Below are positions 1 to 60,021 of a stretch of 64,000 nt of DNA, piece by piece. Every line of letters begins with the position of its first letter. Position 1 is the stretch's first letter. Origin of the DNA: Rebecca billardiae RCC1528 (lineage: Eukaryota > Protista > Haptophyta). The position numbers and the translations under genes are program-made. The notes under the pieces were generated by a model. The model did no database searches, was not told the origin of the DNA, and worked only from the letters and a program-made list of their open reading frames with translations. The DNA lies in the NCBI GenBank assembly GCA_965240325.2, contig OZ251228.1, positions 1,922,001-1,986,000 on the forward strand, in the 5' to 3' direction.

Positions 1-822
1 ACGCGGCGGTGGATCTTGACGACCTGATGACCGAATTGGCGCCGGCGGTCGGTGGCGAGCGACGACGAGCCGCTGATGCGCCTGACAGCTGACATGACGC
101 TGAGTGACACTGACGGGTATGAGCGCGAGAGGTTGCTGACGATGCGTGTATACAAACACGGTGTATGTAGTCGTATGCCCCGGCGGCGAAGGTCTGACAG
201 CAGCAGCATAGTAACACTACATATGCGCCCAGCAGTCAGCACACAGATCGTCAATCAGCAATCAGACATCGTCAATCTCTTACCAGCCCGCAGCCTGCGA
301 AATCCGCCATTTTGGCCGGTTTTGCTCGAAACATCCACACCTTGACACCGGTGGGAGAACGAGCCTGTTGCAGGTGCCGAACCCGTGTTTGCCGCCGAGC
401 ACGTCCGCGCACGCCGGCAAGCGAGCGTTGCGCATCCACGCCAAACACATGCGCACCAGGCAGACGCGAGAACTCGCCCTTAAAAGCCCTCCTGCGCGCG
501 CGCGCGCGCGTTGCGGCGCGGCGGGCGGGCGGGCGTGATGCGTTGCACGCAAAGCAGATGGTGCCTGCGCGCGGCGAGGGCGGCGAGGGAGGGCGGGAGC
601 GCGCGCGAATGAGGCCGGTAGGTGTCCTGACCCGCGCCCGCAGCGCGCGCGCACCCGCAGCGGCCGTATGTGAGCGAACGAGCGCGCCGCGCGTGGCCGC
701 CATCGTGTCGCTGTGCGGTTGGGGGCGCCGCCCGTGGGTTTGTGGGATAAGCCCGGGGCACCTCACTCGCCTGAAACTCCAGGGAGCGTCTGCGCACAAG
801 GCTCGCGCTAGCCGGCCAGGTC

Positions 823-1936
823 GATCACACCGGCTGCACCAAGGGGCCTTCATTCGGCAAAGCCGGGCGACGCGCGCGCCAGCCGGTGCGCTACGCACAA
901 GCTGGTCGGCATGGTCGACGTAACGAGCCCCAAGTGTGATCACACCGGCTGCACCAAGCGGCCTTCGTTCGGCATGCCGGGCGACGCGCGCGCCAGCCGG
1001 TGCGCTACGCACAAGCTGGCCGGCATGGCCGACGTGAAGAACCCCAAGTGTGATCACGCGGGCTGCACCAAGGGGCCTTCTTTCGGCATGCCGGGCGACG
1101 CGCGCGCCAGCCGGTGCGCCACGCACCAGCTGGCCGGCATGGTCAACGTGGTGAGCCCCATGTGTGATCACACCGGCTGCACCAAGTGGCCTTCGTTCGG
1201 CATGCCGGGCGACGCGCGCGCCAGCCGGTGCGCCACGCACAAGCTGGCCGGCATGGTCAACGTGGTGAGCCCCACGTGTGATCACACCGGCTGCACCAAG
1301 GGGCCTTCGTTCGGCATGCCAGGCGACGCGCGCGCCAGCCGGTGCGCTACGCACAAGCTGGCCGGCATGGTCGACATCAAGAACCCCAAGTGTGATCACG
1401 CGGGCTGCACCAAGCAGCCTTCGTTCGGCATGCCGGGCGACGCGCGCGCCAGCCGGTGCACTACGCACAAGCTGGCCGGCATGGTGGACGTGAGGAGCCC
1501 CACGTGTGATCACACCGGCTGCACCAAGGGGCCTTCGTTCGGCATGCCGGGCGACGCGCGCGCCAGCCGGTGCGCTACGCACAAGCTGGCCGGCATGGTC
1601 GACGTGAAGAACCCCAAGTGTGATCACGCGGGCTGCACCACGCGGCCGTACTTCGGCATGCCGGGCGATACGCGCCCCAGCCGGTGCGCTACGCACAAGC
1701 TGGCCGGCATGGTGGACGTGGTGCACCCCAAGTGCGGTGAGGCCGGCTGTACCACACGGCCTTCGTTCGCCATGCCGGGCGTAGCGCGCGCCAGCCGATG
1801 CGCTACGCACAAGCTGGCCGGCATGGTCGACGTGAAGAGCCCCACGTGTGATCACGCGGGCTGCACCACACGGCCTTCGTTCGGCATGCTGGGCGACGCG
1901 CGCGCCAGCCGGTGCGGTACGCACAAGCTGGCAGGC
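823..1936 (+). repeat. 114-bp coding tandem repeat, 9 full units plus 1 partial unit
   Basis: Units start at 911, 1025, 1139, 1253, 1367, 1481, 1595, 1709 and 1823. The upstream partial unit has a +1 indel (ttcggcaaagccg vs ttcggcatgccg). Confidence 0.9.
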
Positions 1937-2347
1937 ATGCTTCCGCTGTCACGTGGCAACAGCAGCGTTCACGTGGCCAAGAGCTCGGCCTCCATGCACT
2001 CCCAGATCGGTTCCAGCAAACGTCCCCGGGCACAGCACTGCGTTGCCGATGGGCCTGCACGTGCTCTGCGCGCAAGGCCCAGCATTGCCCTGCTGCCTGC
2101 CAATGCAACAGGCTGGCCACAAGGCGAGGCGACTGTGTCTCCAATGCTGCTACCCATTGTAATGGGCGAAGAATTCATCCCCTCTGGCTCGATGCAGCCG
2201 CAGGTCGTGGGTCACCTTCAGACTCAGGATCATCCAATGGCATCCGTGTCGGCGGTGCTCCCGCCAGAGGCGCCAGAGCTCCCTGTGGTTACTGTGGGTC
2301 AGATCGACTACTACCACGCGCCGCTGGTCAGCAGATTGACGAACTGA
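911..2347 (+). CDS. EsV-1-7-type cysteine-rich repeat protein (9 x 38-aa C-x4-C-x16-C-x2-H units plus a unique C-terminal tail)
   Basis: Nine 114-bp units, consensus MVDVKxPKCDHxGCTKxPSFGMPGDARASRCATHKLAG, matching the EsV-1-7 motif pattern. True start uncertain because a frameshifted partial unit lies at ~823-910. Confidence 0.8.
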   Translation: MVDVTSPKCDHTGCTKRPSFGMPGDARASRCATHKLAGMADVKNPKCDHAGCTKGPSFGMPGDARASRCATHQLAGMVNVVSPMCDHTGCTKWPSFGMPGDARASRCATHKLAGMVNVVSPTCDHTGCTKGPSFGMPGDARASRCATHKLAGMVDIKNPKCDHAGCTKQPSFGMPGDARASRCTTHKLAGMVDVRSPTCDHTGCTKGPSFGMPGDARASRCATHKLAGMVDVKNPKCDHAGCTTRPYFGMPGDTRPSRCATHKLAGMVDVVHPKCGEAGCTTRPSFAMPGVARASRCATHKLAGMVDVKSPTCDHAGCTTRPSFGMLGDARASRCGTHKLAGMLPLSRGNSSVHVAKSSASMHSQIGSSKRPRAQHCVADGPARALRARPSIALLPANATGWPQGEATVSPMLLPIVMGEEFIPSGSMQPQVVGHLQTQDHPMASVSAVLPPEAPELPVVTVGQIDYYHAPLVSRLTN

Positions 2348-3142
2348 TGATGACGATTGCTGACGACATCTATCTGAAAGTATAAGCAGTACGGAGTCTG
2401 TTCAGTTGATCAATGTAGACGGTTACGCTACGAAGACTCTGTAGAGTACGTAGTACAGGCAATCATTGCAGGCAATAATAATATATTTATAAGCGGACGA
2501 GCTGCTGCTGTCATCACGATAAGATTAATTATAAGAAACTCAGAGACAGATAAATCATAAATTGCCAACTGCCCGACTGGCGGGGCTTGCGGCTTGCCCG
2601 ATGCTATCTGATGCGGATCATCTGGCCTAGAAATTCTGAGACTACCGATTGGCTGGTTCGCTATACGCATAGTCACGTACTAAGAAACCAGGACTCTACG
2701 TCACGTCGCGGCTGGCAAGTGGTCCGCCGAGGCGCAGTCGGCAGTGCGCAGCCCGTGGGACGCGGCGCGCGACCGGACTACGAGTACAGGCCAATAATAA
2801 GTCCCGACTTCTCCTGATGACTGACTCCTGGCCAGTGCACCGCAGTATCCATGCAACATCATGCCAGATTTGCTCCAAAATGGCCCAAAATGTTTCTTCG
2901 GCCTCGCCGGCCGGGCCTAAAGACTCAAGCGGGGGGCTCTGCCCCCCTGCGCCGCCCCCCGCGCCTGCGCAGCGGGCGGACCTAGCTAAGAAACTGAGAC
3001 TCCGTAGGCGCTCGGGCTACCGAACGGCTAAGAAACCGAGACTAGCCGTGAGATCTCTGATGACTTCTTATTGCCCGCGATTGCCTGTACAGTGCTAAGA
3101 CTGGTAGACTTTCGTCGCTACTTGACTCAGCTCTCTGCTACG

Positions 3143-3196
<54 letters not shown>

Positions 3197-4301
3197 TAAT
3201 TATAACTGCTTGCTATATATATAACTTAATTATAACTGCTTGCTATGTGCCCTCTGCCTGCCAATGCAACAGGCTGGCCACAAGGCGAGGCGACTGTGTC
3301 TCCAATGCTGCTACCCATTGTAATGGGCGAAGAATTCATCCCCTCTGGCTCGATGCAGCCGCAGGTCGTGGGTCACCTTCAGACTCAGGATCATCCAATG
3401 GCATCCGTGTCGGCGGTGCTCCCGCCAGAGGCGCCAGAGCTCCCTGTGGTTACTGTGGGTCAGATCGACTACTACCACGCGCCGCTGGTCAGCAGATTGA
3501 CGAACTGATGATGACGATTGCTGACGACATCTATCTGAAAGTATAAGCAGTAGAGTCTGTTCAGTTGATCAATGTAGACGGTTACGCTACGAAGACTCTG
3601 TAGAGTACGTAGTACAGGCAATCATTGCAGGCAATAATAATATATTTATAAGCGGACGAGCTGCTGCTGTCATCACGATAAGATTAATTATAAGAAACTC
3701 AGAGACAGATAAATCATAAATTGCCAACTGCCCGACTGGCGGGGCTTGCGGCTTGCCCGATGCTATCTGATGCGGATCATCTGGCCTAGAAATTCTGAGA
3801 CTACCGATTGGCTGGTTCGCTATACGCATAGTCACGTACTAAGAAACCAGGACTCTACGTCACGTCGCGGCTGGCAAGTGGTCCGCCGAGGCGCAGTCGG
3901 CAGTGCGCAGCCCGTGGGACGCGGCGCGCGACCGGACTACGAGTACAGGCCAATAATAAGTCCCGACTTCTCCTGATGACTGACTCCTGGCCAGTGCACC
4001 GCAGTATCCATGCAACATCATGCCAGATTTGCTCCAAAATGGCCCAAAATGTTTCTTCGGCCTCGCCGGCCGGGCCTAAAGACTCAAGCGGGGGGCTCTG
4101 CCCCCCTGCGCCGCCCCCCGCGCCTGCGCAGCGGGCGGACCTAGCTAAGAAACTGAGACTCCGTAGGCGCTCGGGCTACCGAACGGCTAAGAAACCGAGA
4201 CTAGCCGTGAGATCTCTGATGACTTCTTATTGCCCGCGATTGCCTGTACAGTGCTAAGACTGGTAGACTTTCGTCGCTACTTGACTCAGCTCTCTGCTAC
4301 G

Positions 4302-4349
<48 letters not shown>

Positions 4350-4409
4350 TAATTATAACTGCTTGCTATATATATAACTTAATTATAACTGCTTGCTATG
4401 TGCCCTCTG
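2093..4409. repeat. ~1.16-kb tandem duplication (2093-3253 and 3254-4409)
   Basis: Identical ORFs recur at offsets of 1159-1161. Copies differ by a 2-bp indel and (AT)25 vs (AT)22. The second copy duplicates only the 3' end of the repeat gene (3245-3508). Confidence 0.9.
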
Positions 4410-5074
4410 TGAAATATACCGCAGTCTATCCGATTATATCCGTAACGAATGATTAAGCTAGCGCCGCAGCTGATTATATTACTTCTTAAATAATGGCCCG
4501 CGGTACAGGGCGGAGCGCGTAGCGTGGAGCCCCGCCGGGGGCCCTCACTACGTTGTCAAAAAGATCTTTTGATCAAAGAAAGGGGGACGGGGGACGATTT
4601 TCAGGGCTGTTGGAGGGTGAGTTTTCGATTAACGGCCCGATGTCGTGCGTCCCCAAGCGCATCAACGCGTTCCGCATGCCGAGCCGGTTCGCGTGCGCGT
4701 CCAGGAATCAGGATTTCTGATCCGATGTCTTGCGCGACCAGAGTGCGCGCGCGCCCGCGCCCCCGCGTTTGACTGCGGTCGAGGGTTCACGACCCACTGG
4801 TCATCGCGGGGAACGATCGCCGGACCGCCCAGTGGTTCCGGAGTGGATCACTGTTGTCTGTTGCTGGGCGGAGTCCGGCCCCGGGCATTATACAATAATA
4901 ACATTAATATGGCGCAGATATTCGTATACTGACAACGTGACGGCCTTCGAGCTTTATTCTGATTACTCACGTCCGGGCGCGCCTATTTCGGCAATCGCGT
5001 CTTGTCGGAATAGACAGCAATGTACGGAGTGTACCCCTCAACCCTCATATATATATATATATGTGCGGCCGTCA

Positions 5075-6310
5075 TCACGCCGCGGCGCGCAATGCCAGCA
5101 GCTGCGGCCGCAGGCAGCGCAGCAGCCGGCGGTGGCCCTCCCCATTTGGGTGCAGCGCGTCAGGCATCAGCTCGCGGGCGACGATCGGGTCTTGCCACTC
5201 ACGCGCGTCCTCGCCTGAGCCGCGCGCTTCGGCGCTCCCGCTGAACCGCCGGCGCTGCCGCTTGGCGACGAAGCTCCACGACGGGAAGAGCATCCGCTCG
5301 CCGTTGGGCGCGGCGCGTCGGAAGATGTGACCGCAGCTGGCGAGCGCAATGCGCCCGCCGTGCTGCGGCGGTGCGCTGACGGCGTCGGCAGCGGCGTCGG
5401 CGCGCATGGCCACGCTGAGCTCGGCAACCACGCGCGCCAGCCCGCGGTTCGTCTCCTCCAGCACCGCCTCGAACGAGCGCATCGGCCGGCCGCCCTCGTC
5501 GCAGCGCGGAGGGCAGATGCGCTTCAGCACCGGTCTGTCATTGCGCGGCAGCAGGCTGTTCACCAGGACGGAGGCGCGGCTGTTGTGCAGCAGCCAGCTC
5601 GCGACGGCGCGCACGCCGGCAATCGTCTCGTTCGCCGTGTGCCCCTGCCCGATGTTGTTCGTGCCGATGTGCAGGTTCACCACCGCGCGCGCGCGCCGCA
5701 GGCCGGGTGGCAGCTCTCCGTTCTGCAGCCGCCACAGCAGGTGCTGTGTCTGGTCGCCCGAGATGGCGAGGACGAGGGAGTGCGCGAACTCGGACGGGTC
5801 GAAGGCCGCCTGCAGCGCCTCGGGGGCGCCCTCGCACCGCGCGGCGGGCTGCCCCAGCTTCGTGCCCACGTAGCTCTCCGTGATCGAGTCCCCAATCATG
5901 AGCAGCGCACACGGCGGCTCGGCAGCCGGACCGACAGCGCTCTTCTCGTGGAGCCGGTGCTCGGCGGCGGTCAGCTCGGCTTCGGCCTGACGCGCTAAGC
6001 GGATGTTGCGCCGGTGGGTCTGCCACCACGACAGGCAGAGGCCGCGCGTGTTCACCGTCACGTGCGTGCGCGGCGTTGGCGCCGTGGCGCGCTCGTGGCA
6101 CTCGCCCTGCGAGGTGCACATGCGCACGTGCTTGTCGAATGGGCCGAGCGCGGCGCACGCGCGGTCCAGGTCCTCGTCATGCTGGGACGAAGCAACGGCG
6201 AGGGAGGCATTCGTCGGCGCCGCCGCGCCGAGCGCCAACGCGCCGACGACCGCCAGGCCGAGCAGGTGGGTGCACCTGCGCCGCGCGCCACGTGCAGCGT
6301 CCGCCATCAT
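5075..6310 (-). CDS. SGNH/GDSL hydrolase (PAF-acetylhydrolase Ib-like), probably secreted
   Basis: Blocks IGDSITE, AISGDQTQHLLWRL, HIGTNN and DALHP; hydrophobic N-terminus LLGLAVVGALALG. Confidence 0.85.
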   Translation of the reverse strand: MMADAARGARRRCTHLLGLAVVGALALGAAAPTNASLAVASSQHDEDLDRACAALGPFDKHVRMCTSQGECHERATAPTPRTHVTVNTRGLCLSWWQTHRRNIRLARQAEAELTAAEHRLHEKSAVGPAAEPPCALLMIGDSITESYVGTKLGQPAARCEGAPEALQAAFDPSEFAHSLVLAISGDQTQHLLWRLQNGELPPGLRRARAVVNLHIGTNNIGQGHTANETIAGVRAVASWLLHNSRASVLVNSLLPRNDRPVLKRICPPRCDEGGRPMRSFEAVLEETNRGLARVVAELSVAMRADAAADAVSAPPQHGGRIALASCGHIFRRAAPNGERMLFPSWSFVAKRQRRRFSGSAEARGSGEDAREWQDPIVARELMPDALHPNGEGHRRLLRCLRPQLLALRAAA

Positions 6311-6366
6311 GCGCGAATGATGAGCAATCTTATTCGTCAGCACATAGATGAGCATCTAGGCCGTTA

Positions 6367-7912
6367 TGGCGGGGGCCGCCGTAGGTCCGCCCCTTGTAGT
6401 GCCCGGGAAAAAGATAAGAAAAAGAAAAATAAAAAAGAAAATCGCCTCACAGAGAAAAGAAAATCGCTTCGCTCACTACCGGGCGCCCTCGCAGCTCCCA
6501 CTGGGGACGCTCGGCCGAAAAAGAGTTAGCGGATGGCGCGGAGCGCGTGGGCCGCGCGCGCCAAATCCAACGCCGGCGCGGACATCGCGCGATGATTCCC
6601 TAGACGGGTTTTCGCCCGATTCGCGATTGCTGCCCTCGTCGTCTCGCGTGCAGGTCGAACGGGGGCTAAATCGACGCGTTTGGAGCGGTACGCTCGGCGC
6701 GTCGACACGATCGTGAGACCTGGGGCGATCCTCGCCCGACGTGCACGTCGAAAGCTCGCACCGGCCATAGCATCATGCGCTGCGCACGATGACCGCCTCG
6801 CGCGATCCACCGTCGCGCGTCGGGCTCGGTGCGAGAAAGCCCTCATCACGAGGCGTCTCGCGGGCGGGAAGCGCCATCGCACGCGACGCAAGATTCGGCG
6901 CGGCCTTCTGAACTCGATCGCCGGAATCCGCGCACCGGACTTTATAGGTGAGCCCACGTCCCGACGTCCGGCCTGCATGGCGTCGACGGTGACCAATGCG
7001 ACGGAAGCGCAGCGCCAACGGCGTACGACGCGCAGCGGACGCACCTCCCGGGTCTGTCGCCGTGGCAGCAACCGCGTCATCGCGAGTTGGCGACCCTCGC
7101 CGCAGCGCGACACAGACAAGCCCGTGATGCCATCCGCAGAGAGATGAAACGTCGAGCATGCAACATCGCCGCGCCATGGCCTCGTCCATGGCGCAGGCGC
7201 TGCGGGACGAGGCGGAAGTCGTCACGCCGGTGACGAATGCGCTGCGATTCGTGTGCTCGCGTGAGCAGCGCTTGCCCACTCTCGATCGCGAGTGGCACAC
7301 GCTGTCGCTGTGCGCGCGCGCGCGCACAACCAACAGCTCCTCGTGCCGCCGAGCACGCGAGCGCCAGACCTGTCGAAGATGCGAAGAGCGACGACCGCGT
7401 AAACGTCAACGCGCTCGTGCTCAGCGTGGCGGCCGTGTACGACGTCAACGCGACCTGCGCCGAGCCCATCATGCCTGGAGCGGACACCGGCAAGCATCCT
7501 CGCGACGACCGCTCTCGGCTGGCGGCAGGAGGACATGCACATGATCTACTCTGGCGGCTTCGTCGGCGGCGAGGCGCTCGATTACGCCATCGCGGTCGAC
7601 ATGCGGCACATACAGCGCGTACCCGCGCTCGCGCGGAGCAACGGGCTACCCGCCCCGCCCCGCGTGCTGCACATTCCCTCGTGGGTGTGGGCCTCGCTGA
7701 TGCGTATACAGTACTCTAAGAGCCCGACAGACCGTGAAACGTGTGTACATCACGTCGGGGAGCCAACTTCACGTGTCACTGGTCCTTGCACTCGACTGTC
7801 CGTCACCCACGGCCACGAGCGAATGTGGAAAGACGCGAACCCGCAAAGGATACATTGCGACAGCACTGGCACGGCCCGCCGACCCCCCGCCCGCCAGGGC
7901 ACAGTTTTTATT
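6367..7912. mobile_element. Dispersed ~1.5-kb repeat, copy 1; non-autonomous Helentron/Helitron-like element
   Basis: Highly similar to the reverse complement of 52344-53884. One end has a GC stem-loop + TTGTAGTGCCCGGG + AG-rich tract; the other end is CCAGGGCACAGTTTTT (short subterminal IR, T-run). The repeat is certain; the class is inferred. Confidence 0.6.
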
Positions 7913-8073
7913 CAGGGCCTGAGAACTAGGAAGTAGATATTGTAGATGAAAAGTATCGTCCGTGTTTCAGGGTCGGTCTTCCGAGCCCCCCCACGCTTTT
8001 TCCCCAGCCCGAGCCCGAACATTGTTGTATGAGGACCTATTGCGAACGCGGGGGCGTGGAGGCCTCCCCAGGA

Positions 8074-8144
8074 TGACGAAACTTGGCCGGGACCAAGTGT
8101 TGTTGGAAATCCAAACAACACTTGGTCCCGGCCAAATTTCGTCA
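8074..8144. repeat. Near-perfect hairpin (~31-bp stem)
   Basis: tgacgaaacttggccgggaccaagtgttgtt ... aacaacacttggtcccggccaaatttcgtca, one mismatch. Confidence 0.9.
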
Positions 8145-9147
8145 CATACTATCTCGTCCCGAAAGATCGCAGGACGGAAGCTTCTGTGACTTCCAACATC
8201 GGCCCACGAGAGGGTCGAGAGCATGCCGTGCGTGCGTGCGGCGGTCGGCGGAGACAAGTACGACCGGCGCGTTCGCGCGCGCGCTCGTATGCTCGGCGGC
8301 GGTGGTGTTGAGGCTGGCCAGTCACGTGTGACGCCTGGCTGCGCTCGCGTGCTTGAGCGCAGCTTGTGCGGCGCAAGCCTCCGTTGTGTGATCTGACGTG
8401 CGCAGAATGCACTCGTCGCGCCTTGCGCCCGGAGCGTTTGAATTCGTAGAAGATTTCGACTCAGCCACGATGCAAACGGTCGTGCGTGTCTCCAGAAGAC
8501 ACTTACGAGCAGGGCTCGACCGTGGCATGCCCACCATCTCCTCATATCATCTCGCTTAGCTGTCTGCGCACACGCGACCAGCTCCACCGTGCTCGGCTGT
8601 CGGCGCCCGCTTGCGCGGTCGGTCGGTGGGACACCTGGTTGCCTACATTGCACACACGAGCTTCTCTTTGCAGATCAAGTGTGCGTTGGCGCTCTGACTG
8701 CCGCCCCTCGCCGACATCATGCGCACGAGAAGGGCCTGCACGTGCACGACAGGGACGCTAGGGTCGCGGGCTGCCCTCGCTGCTTCTCCTAGGCTCCCTT
8801 GGACGAGCAGGTGCCGATCCTCCCGCAATCTCAATAGCTACCGGCGCAACTCCAAAACGGAAAGGAAATGCTCGCAAGAACGCCCGCGGCCCCTCGTTTT
8901 GAGCCCGAACATTTTTGTAAGCCACCCTAGACAAATGCTTCAGGACAGATACCCGTCTGGGCGAGCTTGCGGGGGCTCGGAAGAACGACCCTCAGGCCGC
9001 GCAGGCACCGCCAACCGGCGCGAGCGCGCTCCTCAGCCTGCTGGGCAGGCGTGAGTCCCGGTGAACGGCGAACTCGATCGTCGGAAGCAGCGGAAGTCTC
9101 GATCGCGCCTTTCTCCAGTCACTCCGCCGTCACGAGCGACGGCTGCG

Positions 9148-10596
9148 ATGGCGTCCGTGCCGAACGCGCACCCGTACGCATGGCCTTACGACGGCGCAAT
9201 CAAGCGCGAGACCACCGCGCTCATCATCATCGACATGCAGGTCGACTTCTGCGGCGTCGGCGGTTACGTCGAGCAGATGGGATACGACATCTCGCTCACG
9301 CGCGCGCCGATCGCGCCGCTCAGCAAGCTGCTCGCGGCGGCGCGCGCCGCGGGGGTGCGCGTGATCCACACGCGTGAGGGACACCGCCCCACGCTGAGCG
9401 ACCTGCCGGAGAACAAGCGCGTGCGCTCGAAGGGCATCGGCGCGGAGATTGGCGCGCCCGGGCCGTGTGGCCGCGTGCTCACGCGCGGCGAGCCGGGCTG
9501 GGAGATCATCCCGGAGCTGGCGCCACTGCCGAGCGAGGATGTCATCGACAAGCCTGGCAAGGGCTGCTTCATGGCCACCGATCTCGACCACCTCCTCCGC
9601 ACCGCCGGCGTGCGCCACCTGCTGATCGGCGGCATCACGACGGACGTGTGCGTGCACACGACGATGCGCGATGCCAACGACATGGGCTACGAGTGCCTGC
9701 TGCTGTCGGACGGCACGGCGGCGACGGACCCGAGCAACCACAAGGCGGCGCTCGCCATGGTGGGCATGCAGGGCGGCGTCTTCGGCGCCGTCGCCGACTG
9801 CGACGCCGCCGCGCGCATGCTGCAGGCGCTCGGCCCGGCCAAGCCGCCGCCGCCGCCGCCGGCCGCGGCGCGCAAGGCGCCTCTCGGCGAGCTCAAGCTG
9901 CCCAAGGCGAGCCCGCGCGAGTTCAAGGCGCCGGGCTCGGGGCTCGCGCTCATCATGATCGACTTCCAGCGCGACTTCTTCGAGCCCGGCGGCTTCGCCG
10001 CGCAGCTCGGCAACGACATCTCGCAGCTGGCGCCGTGCGTCGAGCCCGCGAAGCGACTGCTCGCCGCGGCGCGCGCGGCGAGCGTGACCGTCGTGCACAC
10101 GCTCGAGTGCCACGCGGCGGACGGCTCGGACCTGCCGCCGGCGAAGAAGGCGCGGTGCCCGTCGATCGGCGAGGTCCTCGACCCCGCGCGCGGCCGCATC
10201 CTCATCGAGGGCGAGCCCGGCAACGCGATCATCGACTCGCTCGCGCCGGTGGGCGGCGAGCTGATCGTGAACAAGCCGGGCAAGGGCGCGTTCTGGCTGA
10301 CGGGCCTTCACGAGCGGCTGCAGGCGGTGGGCGTGACGCACCTGCTCTTCGCCGGCGTGACGACGGAGGTGTGCGTCCAGACCACGATGCGCGAGGCCAA
10401 CGACCGCGGGTACGACTGCTGCCTCGTCACCGACGCCACCGGCTCGTATTTCCCCGAGTTCAAGAAGTCGGCGATTGAGATGGTCACCGCGCAGGGGGGC
10501 ATCGTCGGCTGGGCGGCGTCGGGCGACGAGGTGTGCGCCGCGCTCGGCGAGCTGGCGGGCAAAGGCTTCAGCACCGTGCCGTGCCGCCAGCAGTGA
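9148..10596 (+). CDS. biuH-trtA: Two-domain cysteine hydrolase: biuret hydrolase (BiuH)-like N-domain fused to triuret hydrolase (TrtA)-like C-domain
   Basis: Domain 1: PYAWPYDG, IIIDMQ, HTREGHRP, DKPGKG, GITTDVCV, RDAND, MQGGVFG. Domain 2: DFQRDFFEPGGF, HTLECH, GVTTEVCVQTTMREANDRG, SYFPEFK, AQGGIVGW. Both retain the Asp-Lys-Cys triad. No introns. Confidence 0.88.
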   Translation: MASVPNAHPYAWPYDGAIKRETTALIIIDMQVDFCGVGGYVEQMGYDISLTRAPIAPLSKLLAAARAAGVRVIHTREGHRPTLSDLPENKRVRSKGIGAEIGAPGPCGRVLTRGEPGWEIIPELAPLPSEDVIDKPGKGCFMATDLDHLLRTAGVRHLLIGGITTDVCVHTTMRDANDMGYECLLLSDGTAATDPSNHKAALAMVGMQGGVFGAVADCDAAARMLQALGPAKPPPPPPAAARKAPLGELKLPKASPREFKAPGSGLALIMIDFQRDFFEPGGFAAQLGNDISQLAPCVEPAKRLLAAARAASVTVVHTLECHAADGSDLPPAKKARCPSIGEVLDPARGRILIEGEPGNAIIDSLAPVGGELIVNKPGKGAFWLTGLHERLQAVGVTHLLFAGVTTEVCVQTTMREANDRGYDCCLVTDATGSYFPEFKKSAIEMVTAQGGIVGWAASGDEVCAALGELAGKGFSTVPCRQQ

Positions 10597-58156: not shown

Positions 58157-60021
58157 TTAGATGATGCCGCCGTGCATCTTGTCGTGGTCCGGGTGCCACG
58201 TGTTCACGCCGTTGTCCATGATGGCCTCCTGGATCCAGCCCATCTTCTGCGCGCCGAGGTGCCCCAGGCAGAAGAGCACGAGCATCGTGTAGCCGACAGC
58301 GAAGCGCCAGCTCTCGTTCTTGCCGAGGTAGTAGTCGCCGCCGTCGGCGTACGAAATGGTGAGCTCGCCCAGCTCGACGGTGGGCTGGCCCTGCAGGTCG
58401 ATCACGTTGTTCCCGTGCATCACGCCCGTCAGCGAGAAGATCGTGCCGATCACGCAGAAGACGGCGCACCGGTCGAATCGCAGGTCGATCAGGTCGCACA
58501 TGATCTGCGTGAGGATGAGCGACGCCATGATGCCCGAGCCGGCGGCGAGGTTGAGCACGCCGGGGCGCGTGTCGCCCGACTCGAGCCGCATGATGTCGGC
58601 GATCACGACCATGATGCCCAGGCACAGCGCCGGGTAGTGCCGCGACGACGACACCTCGAACGACTGCTGCACGATCATCAGGCCGACGAAGATGAGGATG
58701 CAGCCGATCGAGATCCGATCGACGAGCGCGAACACGGTCGGGAACATGCCAGACATGAGGATGATCACGTACACAAACGCGTTGATGAGCGAGTAGCCCG
58801 CCGCGGCGCCGACCTTCTTGTGGCGCGCGTGCCCGATGTACACCGTGGTCGGCAGCGTGCAGCCGAAGAAGGCGCCGATCATCGTGCCGATGCCGTCCAC
58901 GACCATCGCCTCCATCACGTTGTAGTGGTCGCCCTTGGCCATCGCCGCCTCGACGTTCTCCATCGTCTCGATGAACGACTGCAGCGCGACCGGGAAGAGG
59001 ATGGCGATGAAGTCGCCCACGTCGACCATGCCCCGCAGCCCCACCCCCGGCAGCAGCGAGTTCTGCCCCGCGAAGGTGTTGAACATGAACTTGAGCGTGG
59101 CCTCGTTCTCGGCCGGAGTGCCCTGGTACTTGCCGGCGCCCGCCCACTTGAGCACCGTGCCGGTGCCAAAGATGATGAGCGCGGTGGAGCCCGACTTGTA
59201 GATGCCCTTGCCCTCGTTGGCGAAGAAGCCCGTGAACGTGAGCGCGAACGGGATGAAGCCGATGATCGGCTCCGACGCCACCGAGATGAAGGGCGAGAGG
59301 CCGAGCCACACGAAGCCGACCGCCGCGATCGGCGAGTAGAGCGCCGCCTTTGACATGTTGGTCCGGATGATGTTGCCCATCCAGAAGCCGCACACCTCGA
59401 AGACGCCCGAGATGAAGTTGGCCGAGACCGCGCCCGACCACACCCGAAGCGCGAACTCCTCCGGGTCCGCCGTGCCCGCGTGCTTGAAGCACAGCGGCAG
59501 CATGACCGAGAAGGCCATGATGAAGCCGGCGGGCGTGTTGATGCCGTACGGCAGCGCGGTCACGTCGTCGCGGTTCTCGTAGCCGGCGAGCTTGAACGCC
59601 ATCCACGCGTACCAGATGTTGCCGAACGCCAGCGCGAACGCCAGCCCGGGCACGATCTTCCCGAACACCATGTTCTGGTACGCGAGCACGTGCGCAGGCG
59701 TGATCGGGCTGAGCGGACCGCCCGTCAGGATCTGTGCGAGCGACACGACAAACACCATCGCGAAGATGATGCCGAGGATGGAGGAGAGGTTGTCTGCAGG
59801 GGCGAATCGTGCCGGTAGCGCACGCGTGAGCGAGCGCGCGGCGGGACGAGGCCTGCCAGTCGCGCGCGCGCACGCGCGCGCGCCGCCGGCGCGGGAGGGC
59901 GCATACGCGCACGCGCACCAAAGAAGAGCGCCGGGAACGAGTCGGCATCGCCTCGGCGGATGAAGGGGTAATCGCGCTTGATTGGCTGGAGGAAAGGGAC
60001 CTTACCATCACCCGCCGGCAT
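58157..60021 (-). CDS. NCS2/AzgA-like nucleobase-type permease; intron 59794-59918
   Basis: RGDADSFPALFFDNL, DVTALPYGINTP, ENVEAAM..GD.Y, GCTLPTTVYIGH...K.VGA..GYS; many TM helices. Confidence 0.85.

Follow-up and report, generated by a model that had tools for sequence, protein, structure and literature searches.

To our knowledge, characterised examples of the biuret hydrolase BiuH and the triuret hydrolase TrtA all come from bacteria, in which the triuret/biuret operon consists of bmpA-nupABC, biuH, trtA, atzF and trtB and groups the two hydrolase genes with those of a transporter, an allophanate hydrolase and a decarboxylase. The closest described systems are TrtA from Herbaspirillum sp. 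BH-1 (6XIX and 6XJE) and BiuH from R. leguminosarum (5BK6/6AZQ) and Rhodococcus sp. Mel (6XJM). The protein analysed here has the same fold and triad, the contact residues E72, K132 and Q202 or their equivalents, the second-shell discriminators expected for each of its halves and 52-66% identity with these enzymes. However, bacterial BiuH and TrtA are two proteins of 220-260 aa whose genes lie within an operon of transporters and amidases, whereas the present protein is a single 482-aa chain encoded in a eukaryotic nucleus by a gene devoid of operon partners nearby. A comparable joining of consecutive bacterial-type nitrogen-scavenging steps in one eukaryotic polypeptide is known from urea amidolyase (DUR1,2), in which fungi and some algae combine urea carboxylase with allophanate hydrolase, but the folds and chemistry of this enzyme are unrelated and it acts downstream, allophanate being the product of BiuH. 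Other proteins carry at least two IHL domains of the same families in one chain: (i) the dinoflagellate BiuH-BiuH-like type, (ii) the Klebsormidium-type TrtA-TrtA, (iii) the actinobacterial IHL-BiuH and (iv) the Chlorokybus AH_C-BiuH-TrtA. In these other tandem proteins one domain lacks catalytic residues or the Gln loop, whereas both domains are complete in the protein described here.

The gene belongs to an algal, probably haptophyte, nuclear genome and lies in a window of 64 kb, which is the whole stretch of DNA that was analysed. An open frame extends from 9061 to 10596 on the forward strand; its first ATG is at 9148, with an in-frame stop 30 codons 5′ of it and no ATG in between. The 482-aa product is matched twice by PF00857 (Isochorismatase; Pfam, E 1e-79), and a custom HMM places the limits of the two domains, d1 and d2, at aa 1-227 and aa 249-468. 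These domains share 48% identity. About 45 orthologues align without any break over the full length of the protein and the CDS is therefore intronless here; that of the Diacronema orthologue is likewise intronless. Pro/Ala enrichment spans aa 226-265, with seven consecutive Pro within. The first-pass annotation had described a single intronless ORF with two isochorismatase domains and a Pro/Ala linker, a description borne out by the ORF, the Pfam and HMM matches and the alignment, and the motifs GITTDVCV, MQGGVFG, TTEVCVQ and SYFPEFK are all found in the protein. The features of the locus are the following:

9148..10596, + strand: complete intronless CDS of the BiuH-TrtA fusion protein (482 aa + TGA)
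9148..9828, + strand: d1, biuret hydrolase (BiuH)-type isochorismatase-like domain, aa 1-227 (HMM, PDB match, Foldseek, clade)
9232..9234, + strand: Asp29, catalytic triad of d1 (equivalent to BiuH D36)
9550..9552, + strand: Lys135, catalytic triad of d1 (equivalent to BiuH K142)
9649..9651, + strand: Cys168, nucleophile of d1
9769..9780, + strand: Gln208-Gly-Gly-Val211, BiuH-type Gln loop of d1
9829..9891, + strand: Pro/Ala-rich linker, aa 228-248 (sequence; pLDDT 64-79 vs >90 in the domains)
9892..10551, + strand: d2, triuret hydrolase (TrtA)-type isochorismatase-like domain, aa 249-468 (PDB match, HMM, clade)
9961..9963, + strand: Asp272, catalytic triad of d2 (TrtA D24)
10273..10275, + strand: Lys376, catalytic triad of d2 (TrtA K129)
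10372..10374, + strand: Cys409, nucleophile of d2 (TrtA C162)
10492..10503, + strand: Gln449-Gly-Gly-Ile452, TrtA-type Gln loop of d2 (TrtA Q202, I205)
58157..59758, - strand: AzgA/NCS2-like permease ORF, 533 aa, possibly with further 5′ exons

The adjoining genes are eukaryotic (EsV-1-7 repeats, GDSL lipase, F-BAR+GYF, ArfGap). The fusion gene has a host-like codon usage, with a GC3 of 0.96 compared to 0.82-0.93 in its neighbours, and these neighbours together with the GC3 exclude bacterial contamination. An LTR element is also present near the gene.

We consider, with a probability of roughly 0.75, that the encoded protein is a cytosolic bifunctional cysteine amidohydrolase made of an N-terminal BiuH and a C-terminal TrtA, which would be independent modules derived from one ancient fusion. 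The same assignment of the two halves had been made in the first-pass annotation, and four independent lines agree with it: the equivalog HMM, the best-matching structures, the residues that set specificity and the domain tree. With 383.1 bits, d1 passes the cut-off (370) of NF050097, the BiuH equivalog of NCBIfam, whereas d2 stays below it with 214 bits, a score comparable to that of the genuine R. leguminosarum TrtA (244 bits, compared to 428 for the BiuH of this species; the Chlamydomonas d1 and d2, which were also used for calibration, reach 396 and 237 bits). The best solved structure by sequence is the BiuH 6XJM for d1 (341 bits vs 199 for TrtA) and the TrtA 6XIX for d2 (233 bits vs 196 for BiuH). 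The folds match the BiuH structures 6XJM and 6AZQ for d1 (Foldseek TMt 0.97-0.98, rmsd ~1.0 Å) and 6XIX for d2 (TMt 0.94).

Both Asp-Lys-Cys triads are intact. Residues Asp36-Lys142-Cys175, F41, K145 and Q215 of BiuH (R. leguminosarum numbering) correspond to D29, K135, C168, F34, K138 and Q208 in d1, and the D24-K129-C162 triad of TrtA and its contacts E72, K132 and Q202 to D272, K376, C409, E320, K379 and Q449 in d2. The residues discriminating BiuH from TrtA have been defined previously (PMC7948467). At these second-shell positions (35, 41, 134, 160, 187 and 205 of TrtA), d2 displays six out of six residues in the TrtA state (F283, N289, A381, E407, Y434 and I452 for F35, N41, A134, E160, Y187 and I205), which is kept in 30-34 of the 34 bacterial operon TrtA. 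The corresponding residues of d1 are Y40, Y46, C140, D166, T193 and V211. All of them except C140 show the state found in 30/30 bacterial BiuH; at position 140, d1 has a Cys compared to the consensus Ser, as do 6 of 50 algal d1, and the A134S substitution is neutral in TrtA (PMC7948467). Since single mutations fail to swap the specificities of BiuH and TrtA (PMC7948467), this residue signature is an imperfect predictor of substrate. The closest structure to d1 is RhdBiuH, and this enzyme hydrolyses both biuret and triuret (PMC7948467).

In the domain tree (214 rows), the BiuH and TrtA sides are separated with a support of 99. As the first-pass annotation had anticipated, d1 is placed in the BiuH clade and d2 in the TrtA clade, and neither domain falls outside them. 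The clades that contain them, of 62 rows for d1 and 69 rows for d2, are both mostly eukaryotic, both have a support of 96 and are sister to operon enzymes including those of R. leguminosarum. On the BiuH side, d1 is found alongside L052, an orthologue almost identical to the R. leguminosarum BiuH that was crystallised (a likeness judged from 4/6 exact motifs); the anchor of the TrtA clade is the R. leguminosarum operon TrtA, which matches 6XIX at 279 bits.

Orthologues of the fusion are present in haptophytes, green algae, streptophyte algae and pelagophytes (algal genomes and MMETSP transcriptomes). The order BiuH-TrtA, the linker and the signature residues recur in the Diacronema lutheri protein KFE25_007835 (P0001; 72% identity), at whose locus no synteny with that of the window was found, and in the Chlamydomonas reinhardtii protein CHLRE_10g448500v5 (P0020; 61% identity), whose gene, unlike that of the window, has introns and a permease neighbour. 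No cluster more than 72% identical to the window protein was found in a set of 5.8 billion proteins. The two halves of the fusions co-evolve (r = 0.64, Mantel p <= 0.001), which points to a single old fusion common to many algal lineages. The gene would go back to a single ancient fusion of genes of bacterial type, passed on by descent or spread between algal lineages, and not to a recent transfer; with orthologous fusions across algae and co-evolving halves, the fusion was not made in this organism. The first-pass annotation had proposed an operon pair that was transferred horizontally and then fused. BiuH-TrtA fusions also occur on a bacterial-looking contig, where AH_C and amidase genes adjoin, so that the fusion may have either preceded or followed any transfer. 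The Chlorokybus proteins and one metagenomic protein carry an allophanate-hydrolase C-terminal domain (AH_C) in the same chain as BiuH-TrtA. A cyanobacterial (plastid) origin was also considered and gained no support: the algal clades are not nested within cyanobacterial ones, the backbone being an unresolved polytomy. Cyanobacteria do have a biuH...trtA operon.

As to mechanism, the C-terminal TrtA module (D272/K376/C409) would convert triuret to carboxybiuret and NH3, carboxybiuret would give biuret by loss of CO2, either spontaneously or via a separate decarboxylase, and the N-terminal BiuH module (D29/K135/C168) would convert biuret to allophanate and NH3. Allophanate would then be processed elsewhere, by an allophanate hydrolase or through decay to urea and the action of urease. 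These substrates are inferred from the characterised bacterial enzymes, to which the modules are 52-66% identical. In the solved structures of BiuH and TrtA, the specificity-determining Gln is supplied by the partner subunit, whose loop completes the active site (PMC7948467). In view of this supply from the partner, and because both modules have retained the Gln-loop type of their own family, the two modules would be independent on a flexible linker, and each would pair with its counterpart in another chain. The AF2 model of the protein (pLDDT 92, pTM 0.59) predicts no fixed inter-domain contact; as a model of one chain, it gives no information on the oligomeric state. The first-pass annotation had raised channelling as a possibility, which in its direct form appears doubtful because carboxybiuret must decarboxylate between the two steps and the model lacks a fixed domain arrangement. 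Carboxybiuret has a half-life of ~20 min and biuret is a weak inhibitor of TrtA. The benefit of the fusion would probably be a fixed 1:1 co-expression in an organism that lacks operons, possibly together with a local depletion of biuret; substrate tunnelling is an unlikely one.

Three other explanations were weighed. The fold and the chemistry could be right, with the physiological substrate of one or both domains being another small acyl-urea or ureide (formylurea, guanylurea or a breakdown product of purines or pyrimidines), and triuret and biuret only laboratory substrates. We regard this as unlikely. The IHL family does include close relatives with different substrates, such as GuuH and RutB, but the substrate-contact residues and the tested second-shell residues are all conserved here and d1 exceeds a cut-off set at the equivalog level. 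Likewise, the trace activity of TrtA on formylurea has to be set against its high specificity in vitro. Triuret has no known natural source, and NCS2/AzgA nucleobase-type permeases (PF00860) lie beside tandem IHL genes on three unrelated contigs; however, allophanate-hydrolase parts are found among the fusion partners and neighbours.

A quite improbable alternative concerns the pairing of the modules: d1 and d2 of one chain could pair with each other like an IHL dimer, forming hybrid pockets that are each completed by the Gln loop of the other domain and whose specificities could differ. The supply of the specificity-setting Gln by the partner subunit in solved TrtA and BiuH (PMC7948467) is compatible with such an arrangement, and the complementary decay seen in related tandem proteins only makes sense with d1-d2 pairing. 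In the dinoflagellate type, d1 has kept its triad and lost its Gln loop, while d2 retains KMQHGVFGA although it lacks Lys132 and, in some cases, Asp or Cys. In the Klebsormidium type, AQGGIIGW persists in a d1 that is catalytically dead. The AF2 model of the dinoflagellate type reaches a pTM of 0.86, whereas that of the window protein remains at 0.59 despite a pLDDT of 92 and a deeper alignment. Furthermore, the type of the Gln loop matches its own pocket in 49/50 (d1) and 49/51 (d2) algal fusions, and a hybrid site should have functioned poorly from the onset of the fusion, as TrtA Y187T retains <10% activity (PMC7948467). In the actinobacterial IHL-BiuH fusions, d1 lacks Cys and Gln and d2 must therefore be served by another d2. 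Lastly, an artefact (contamination, an unadapted recent transfer or two genes misread as one), which the bacterial nature of the nearest characterised relatives and the lack of introns could have suggested, is effectively refuted by the continuous ORF without stop, the eukaryotic flanking genes and nearby LTR element, the host-like GC3 of 0.96 and the single-chain orthologues in many algal genomes and transcriptomes, including a Chlamydomonas copy that has introns.

The genomic context of the bifunctional enzyme differs from that of its bacterial counterparts. In all the bacterial loci examined (67/67), biuH precedes trtA on the same strand, with a gap of 1.6-4.2 kb and an ABC ATPase gene in between; contrary to the initial supposition, the two genes are thus not adjacent. 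Pfam scans of the neighbouring ORFs in the 64-kb window revealed no allophanate hydrolase, carboxybiuret decarboxylase or ABC transporter, and tblastn gave no match to the AH_C domain in this window. The operon-like clustering is therefore absent here, but it defines the operon and not the enzymes. The AzgA/NCS2-like permease ORF may be functionally linked to the fusion gene, the association being weak at a distance of 48 kb. In L084 and L086, members of this permease family are immediate neighbours of tandem IHL genes, and in Chlamydomonas a PF00860 permease is head-to-head with the fusion gene.

Urea fertiliser, which is applied in very large amounts, contains triuret and biuret as impurities, and the oxidation of urate is a further source of triuret (PMC7948467). 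The conservation of a single-chain BiuH-TrtA in haptophytes, green algae and pelagophytes (for example the bloom-former Aureococcus) suggests that phytoplankton may exploit triuret and biuret as sources of nitrogen or dispose of them as internal by-products. The family also provides a natural comparison between fused enzymes with two active sites and those decayed to a single shared site. A broader proposal, which we put forward only tentatively, is that the fusion could be the core of a widespread and ancient eukaryotic route that recovers nitrogen from triuret and biuret together with an AzgA/NCS2-type permease and urease or allophanate hydrolase, an AH_C decarboxylase-like domain having been added in some lineages. 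In such a route, triuret and biuret would come from intracellular oxidative breakdown of urate and purines or from urea-polluted water. If this were true, triuret would be a genuine metabolite of algal nitrogen cycling, and the series leading from the bifunctional enzyme to a pseudo-dimer with a decayed site would be a natural one in which to follow the evolution of trans-completed active sites once a fusion has taken place.

The window protein is a new sequence. The caution about novelty expressed in the first-pass annotation was justified, as the TrtA paper already places trtA "in some fungi and phytoplankton". A description of a BiuH-TrtA fusion was not found in the searchable literature on algal, Chlamydomonas and tandem-domain topics. 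One paper discusses algal members of the isochorismatase family with regard to salicylate synthesis. In databases, the algal orthologues are labelled "hypothetical", "isochorismatase-like domain-containing" or "rutB", and the reassignment proposed here would be useful for the annotation of such "hypothetical", "rutB" and "isochorismatase" algal proteins.

The BiuH-TrtA fusion gene of the window adds a new member to a widespread algal fusion family that has gone unrecognised. No description of such a fusion was found in the literature searched, the paper on triuret hydrolase (TrtA) places trtA in certain fungi and phytoplankton and does not mention a fusion of biuH and trtA (PMC7948467), and the database names of the fusion orthologues are generic. 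The family would represent a variant of the known two-enzyme system of biuret hydrolase (BiuH) and TrtA, joined in one chain. The relevant ORFs of the window are:

911-2344, + strand: EsV-1-7 ORF with nine cysteine-rich repeats (PF19114, E 6.5e-127)
9061-10596, + strand: ORF containing the fusion gene, whose first ATG is at 9148
58157-59758, - strand: ORF of an AzgA/NCS2-like permease (533 aa), relatives of which are found beside genes encoding tandem isochorismatase-like (IHL) domains

Thirty codons before the first ATG of the fusion gene there is an in-frame stop, with no ATG between, and translation to the TGA stop codon gives a protein of 482 aa. The first-pass annotation had described two isochorismatase-family domains joined by a Pro/Ala linker in one ORF. 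This was confirmed by a Pfam search (two Isochorismatase domains) and by the Pro/Ala-rich linker sequence, and the four motifs then cited (GITTDVCV, MQGGVFG, TTEVCVQ and SYFPEFK) were all found. According to an HMM built for the analysis, the domains, which share 48% identity, extend from aa 1 to 227 and from aa 249 to 468. The N-terminus of the protein coincides with a domain boundary; as neither a presequence nor a C-terminal peroxisomal signal was obvious, the protein is probably cytosolic. The ORFs around the fusion gene code for EsV-1-7 cysteine repeats, a GDSL lipase, an F-BAR and GYF protein and an ArfGap, and GC3 is 0.96 for the fusion ORF versus 0.82-0.93 for its neighbours. Therefore, the fusion gene belongs to a eukaryotic nuclear genome of high GC content. 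Both the fusion protein and the window permease have their best homologues in pavlovophyte haptophytes (Diacronema lutheri and Pavlovales sp. CCMP2436), which points to a haptophyte as the probable source.

Four lines of evidence agree in assigning domain 1 to the BiuH type and domain 2 to the TrtA type. (i) With the NCBIfam BiuH equivalog model (cut-off 370 bits), domain 1 scores 383 bits and domain 2 scores 214, compared to 428 for BiuH and 244 for the operon TrtA of R. leguminosarum, and to 396 and 237 for the two halves of the Chlamydomonas orthologue. (ii) By sequence comparison, the closest solved structure is Rhodococcus BiuH (6XJM, 341 bits; TrtA, 199) for domain 1 and Herbaspirillum TrtA (6XIX, 233 bits; BiuH, 196) for domain 2, and the AlphaFold2 model of the fusion protein (pLDDT 92) superposes on the BiuH and TrtA structures with TMt of 0.94-0.98. 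(iii) TrtA has a D24, K129, C162 triad, contacts E72, K132 and a Q202 donated by the partner subunit, and six positions separating it from BiuH, F35, N41, A134, E160, Y187 and I205 (PMC7948467). Domain 2 shows the TrtA state at the triad, the contacts and all six separating positions, whereas domain 1 shows the BiuH state (Y, Y, D, T, V), with Cys in place of the BiuH-consensus Ser. The separating sites are essentially invariant among 30 BiuH and 34 TrtA derived from bacterial operons, and the codon positions of the site residues in the fusion gene were verified. (iv) A maximum-likelihood tree of 214 domains (quick search, SH-aLRT support only, midpoint-rooted, bacterial sample skewed towards the 80 top TrtA matches) splits the BiuH and TrtA sides with 99% support. 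It places domain 1 in a clade of 62 rows and domain 2 in a clade of 69 rows, each dominated by eukaryotes (96% support) and adjoining operon enzymes including those of R. leguminosarum, whose BiuH is a near-identical counterpart of the crystallised enzyme and whose TrtA has 6XIX as best match. Therefore, neither half falls outside the BiuH or TrtA clade predicted for it.

A word-index search retrieved full-length fusions from Diacronema (72% identity along the full-length alignment), many chlorophytes including Chlamydomonas reinhardtii (CHLRE_10g448500v5), the streptophyte alga Chlorokybus, pelagophytes (Aureococcus, Aureoumbra and Chrysophaeum) and MMETSP transcriptomes. Since transcripts from relatives carry both domains, the fusion is expressed there as one unit. 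The subtrees of the two domains contain the same major groups, and pairwise identities of the two halves are correlated (r = 0.64, Mantel p <= 0.001); this points to a single old fusion that evolved as a unit. The Diacronema orthologue is likewise intronless, its locus showing no synteny with the window; the Chlamydomonas orthologue has introns.

In all 67 bacterial loci that carry the two genes, biuH and trtA share a strand with biuH upstream, an order identical to that of the domains in the fusion. The bacterial genes, previously described as separate neighbours, are indeed separate but not directly adjacent, as an ABC ATPase gene lies between them in 67/67 loci (gap of 1.6-4.2 kb). The operon order, Bmp-type binding protein, two permeases, biuH, ATPase, (cupin), trtA, amidase, agrees with published synteny. 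Many filamentous cyanobacteria (L019, L024, L031, L036, L039, L045, L048, L072, L074-L076 and other loci) carry the bmp-permease-biuH-ABC ATPase-cupin-trtA cluster in full, the gene directly before trtA encoding a ChrR-type cupin. A prokaryote-like 377-kb ENA contig (L084, 8001-9356) encodes another BiuH-TrtA fusion (P0037, 451 aa, short linker); after it come a permease gene and an AH_C gene, and an amidase gene is close by. Since the two halves of P0037 do not group as sisters of the algal halves in the 214-domain tree, BiuH-TrtA fusion has arisen more than once, P0037 being an independent case.

From the conserved residues and bacterial enzymology, the C-terminal module would convert triuret to carboxybiuret and NH3, carboxybiuret would then lose CO2, and the N-terminal module would convert biuret to allophanate and NH3. 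Carboxybiuret has a half-life of about 20 min in vitro, and its CO2 loss is catalysed by TrtB in bacteria (PMC7948467). The suggestion that fusion allows channelling was not borne out: tunnelling between the two sites is unlikely because this chemical step separates the two reactions, and AlphaFold2 models both domains confidently, with a linker of lower confidence, without fixing their mutual position (pTM 0.59). The fusion could rather provide stoichiometric co-expression and possibly also biuret removal, biuret being a weak TrtA inhibitor (PMC7948467). In the solved TrtA and BiuH, the Gln setting specificity comes from the partner subunit (PMC7948467). Since the Gln loop of each window module matches its own pocket (as in 49/50 and 49/51 algal orthologues), modules would pair like with like between two chains.

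Pairing of the two domains within one chain, giving hybrid active sites, is improbable for BiuH-TrtA proteins, even if other tandem IHL proteins suggest such an arrangement. In those of dinoflagellates and MMETSP (P0043, P0046, P0048, P0053, P0059, P0061, P0062, P0064, P0066), domain 1 keeps a complete Asp-Lys-Cys triad and has lost the trans-acting Gln loop, whereas domain 2 has lost Lys132 (replaced by Y, S, I or H), sometimes also Asp or Cys, and has an unchanged Gln loop, KMQHGVFGA. This suggests an intramolecular pseudo-dimer with one shared active site. In TrtA-TrtA proteins (P0077, P0079 from Klebsormidium nitens, P0091, P0101), all three triad residues of the Klebsormidium-type domain 1 are replaced (Asp to Lys, Lys129 to T/A/S, Cys to G/T), which leaves it catalytically dead but with an AQGGIIGW Gln loop, and domain 2 is of intact TrtA type. 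Such complementary decay is expected if pairing takes place within a chain, each domain completing the other, and AlphaFold2 gave a pTM of 0.86 for a dinoflagellate-type protein (lower pLDDT, alignment of only nine sequences), the comparison of pTM between tandem proteins being an indirect measure of pairing. Therefore, linker-mediated intramolecular pairing is possible in the tandem IHL family. In both of these types, catalytic residues or a Gln loop have been lost, unlike in the window protein, whose two domains are complete. In about 40 proteins from actinobacteria or metagenomes (410-480 aa, within P0073-P0118), a degenerate IHL domain (Cys to Pro, Gln to Ser) precedes a complete BiuH domain, which groups close to the clade of algal domain 1.

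The window permease, for which no Pfam match above threshold was found, may transport triuret, biuret or a related ureide. A permease of the same family directly follows the L084 fusion gene (stop and start overlap), and another, 48% identical to the window permease, is head-to-head with a TrtA-TrtA gene in locus L086. On Chlamydomonas reinhardtii chromosome 10 (L085), a PF00860 xanthine/uracil permease gene is head-to-head with the fusion gene, the pair being:

1-4749, - strand, and 6001-9734, + strand: orthologue with introns and permease

As the window permease lies 48 kb from the fusion gene, its functional link with it is only suggestive. Lastly, an allophanate-hydrolase C-terminal domain (PF21986) precedes BiuH-TrtA at the N-terminal side in P0058, P0067 (Chlorokybus) and P0029 (metagenome). 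The Chlorokybus and P0029 chains thus each carry three pathway-related modules, in which the PF21986 domain may supply carboxybiuret decarboxylation.
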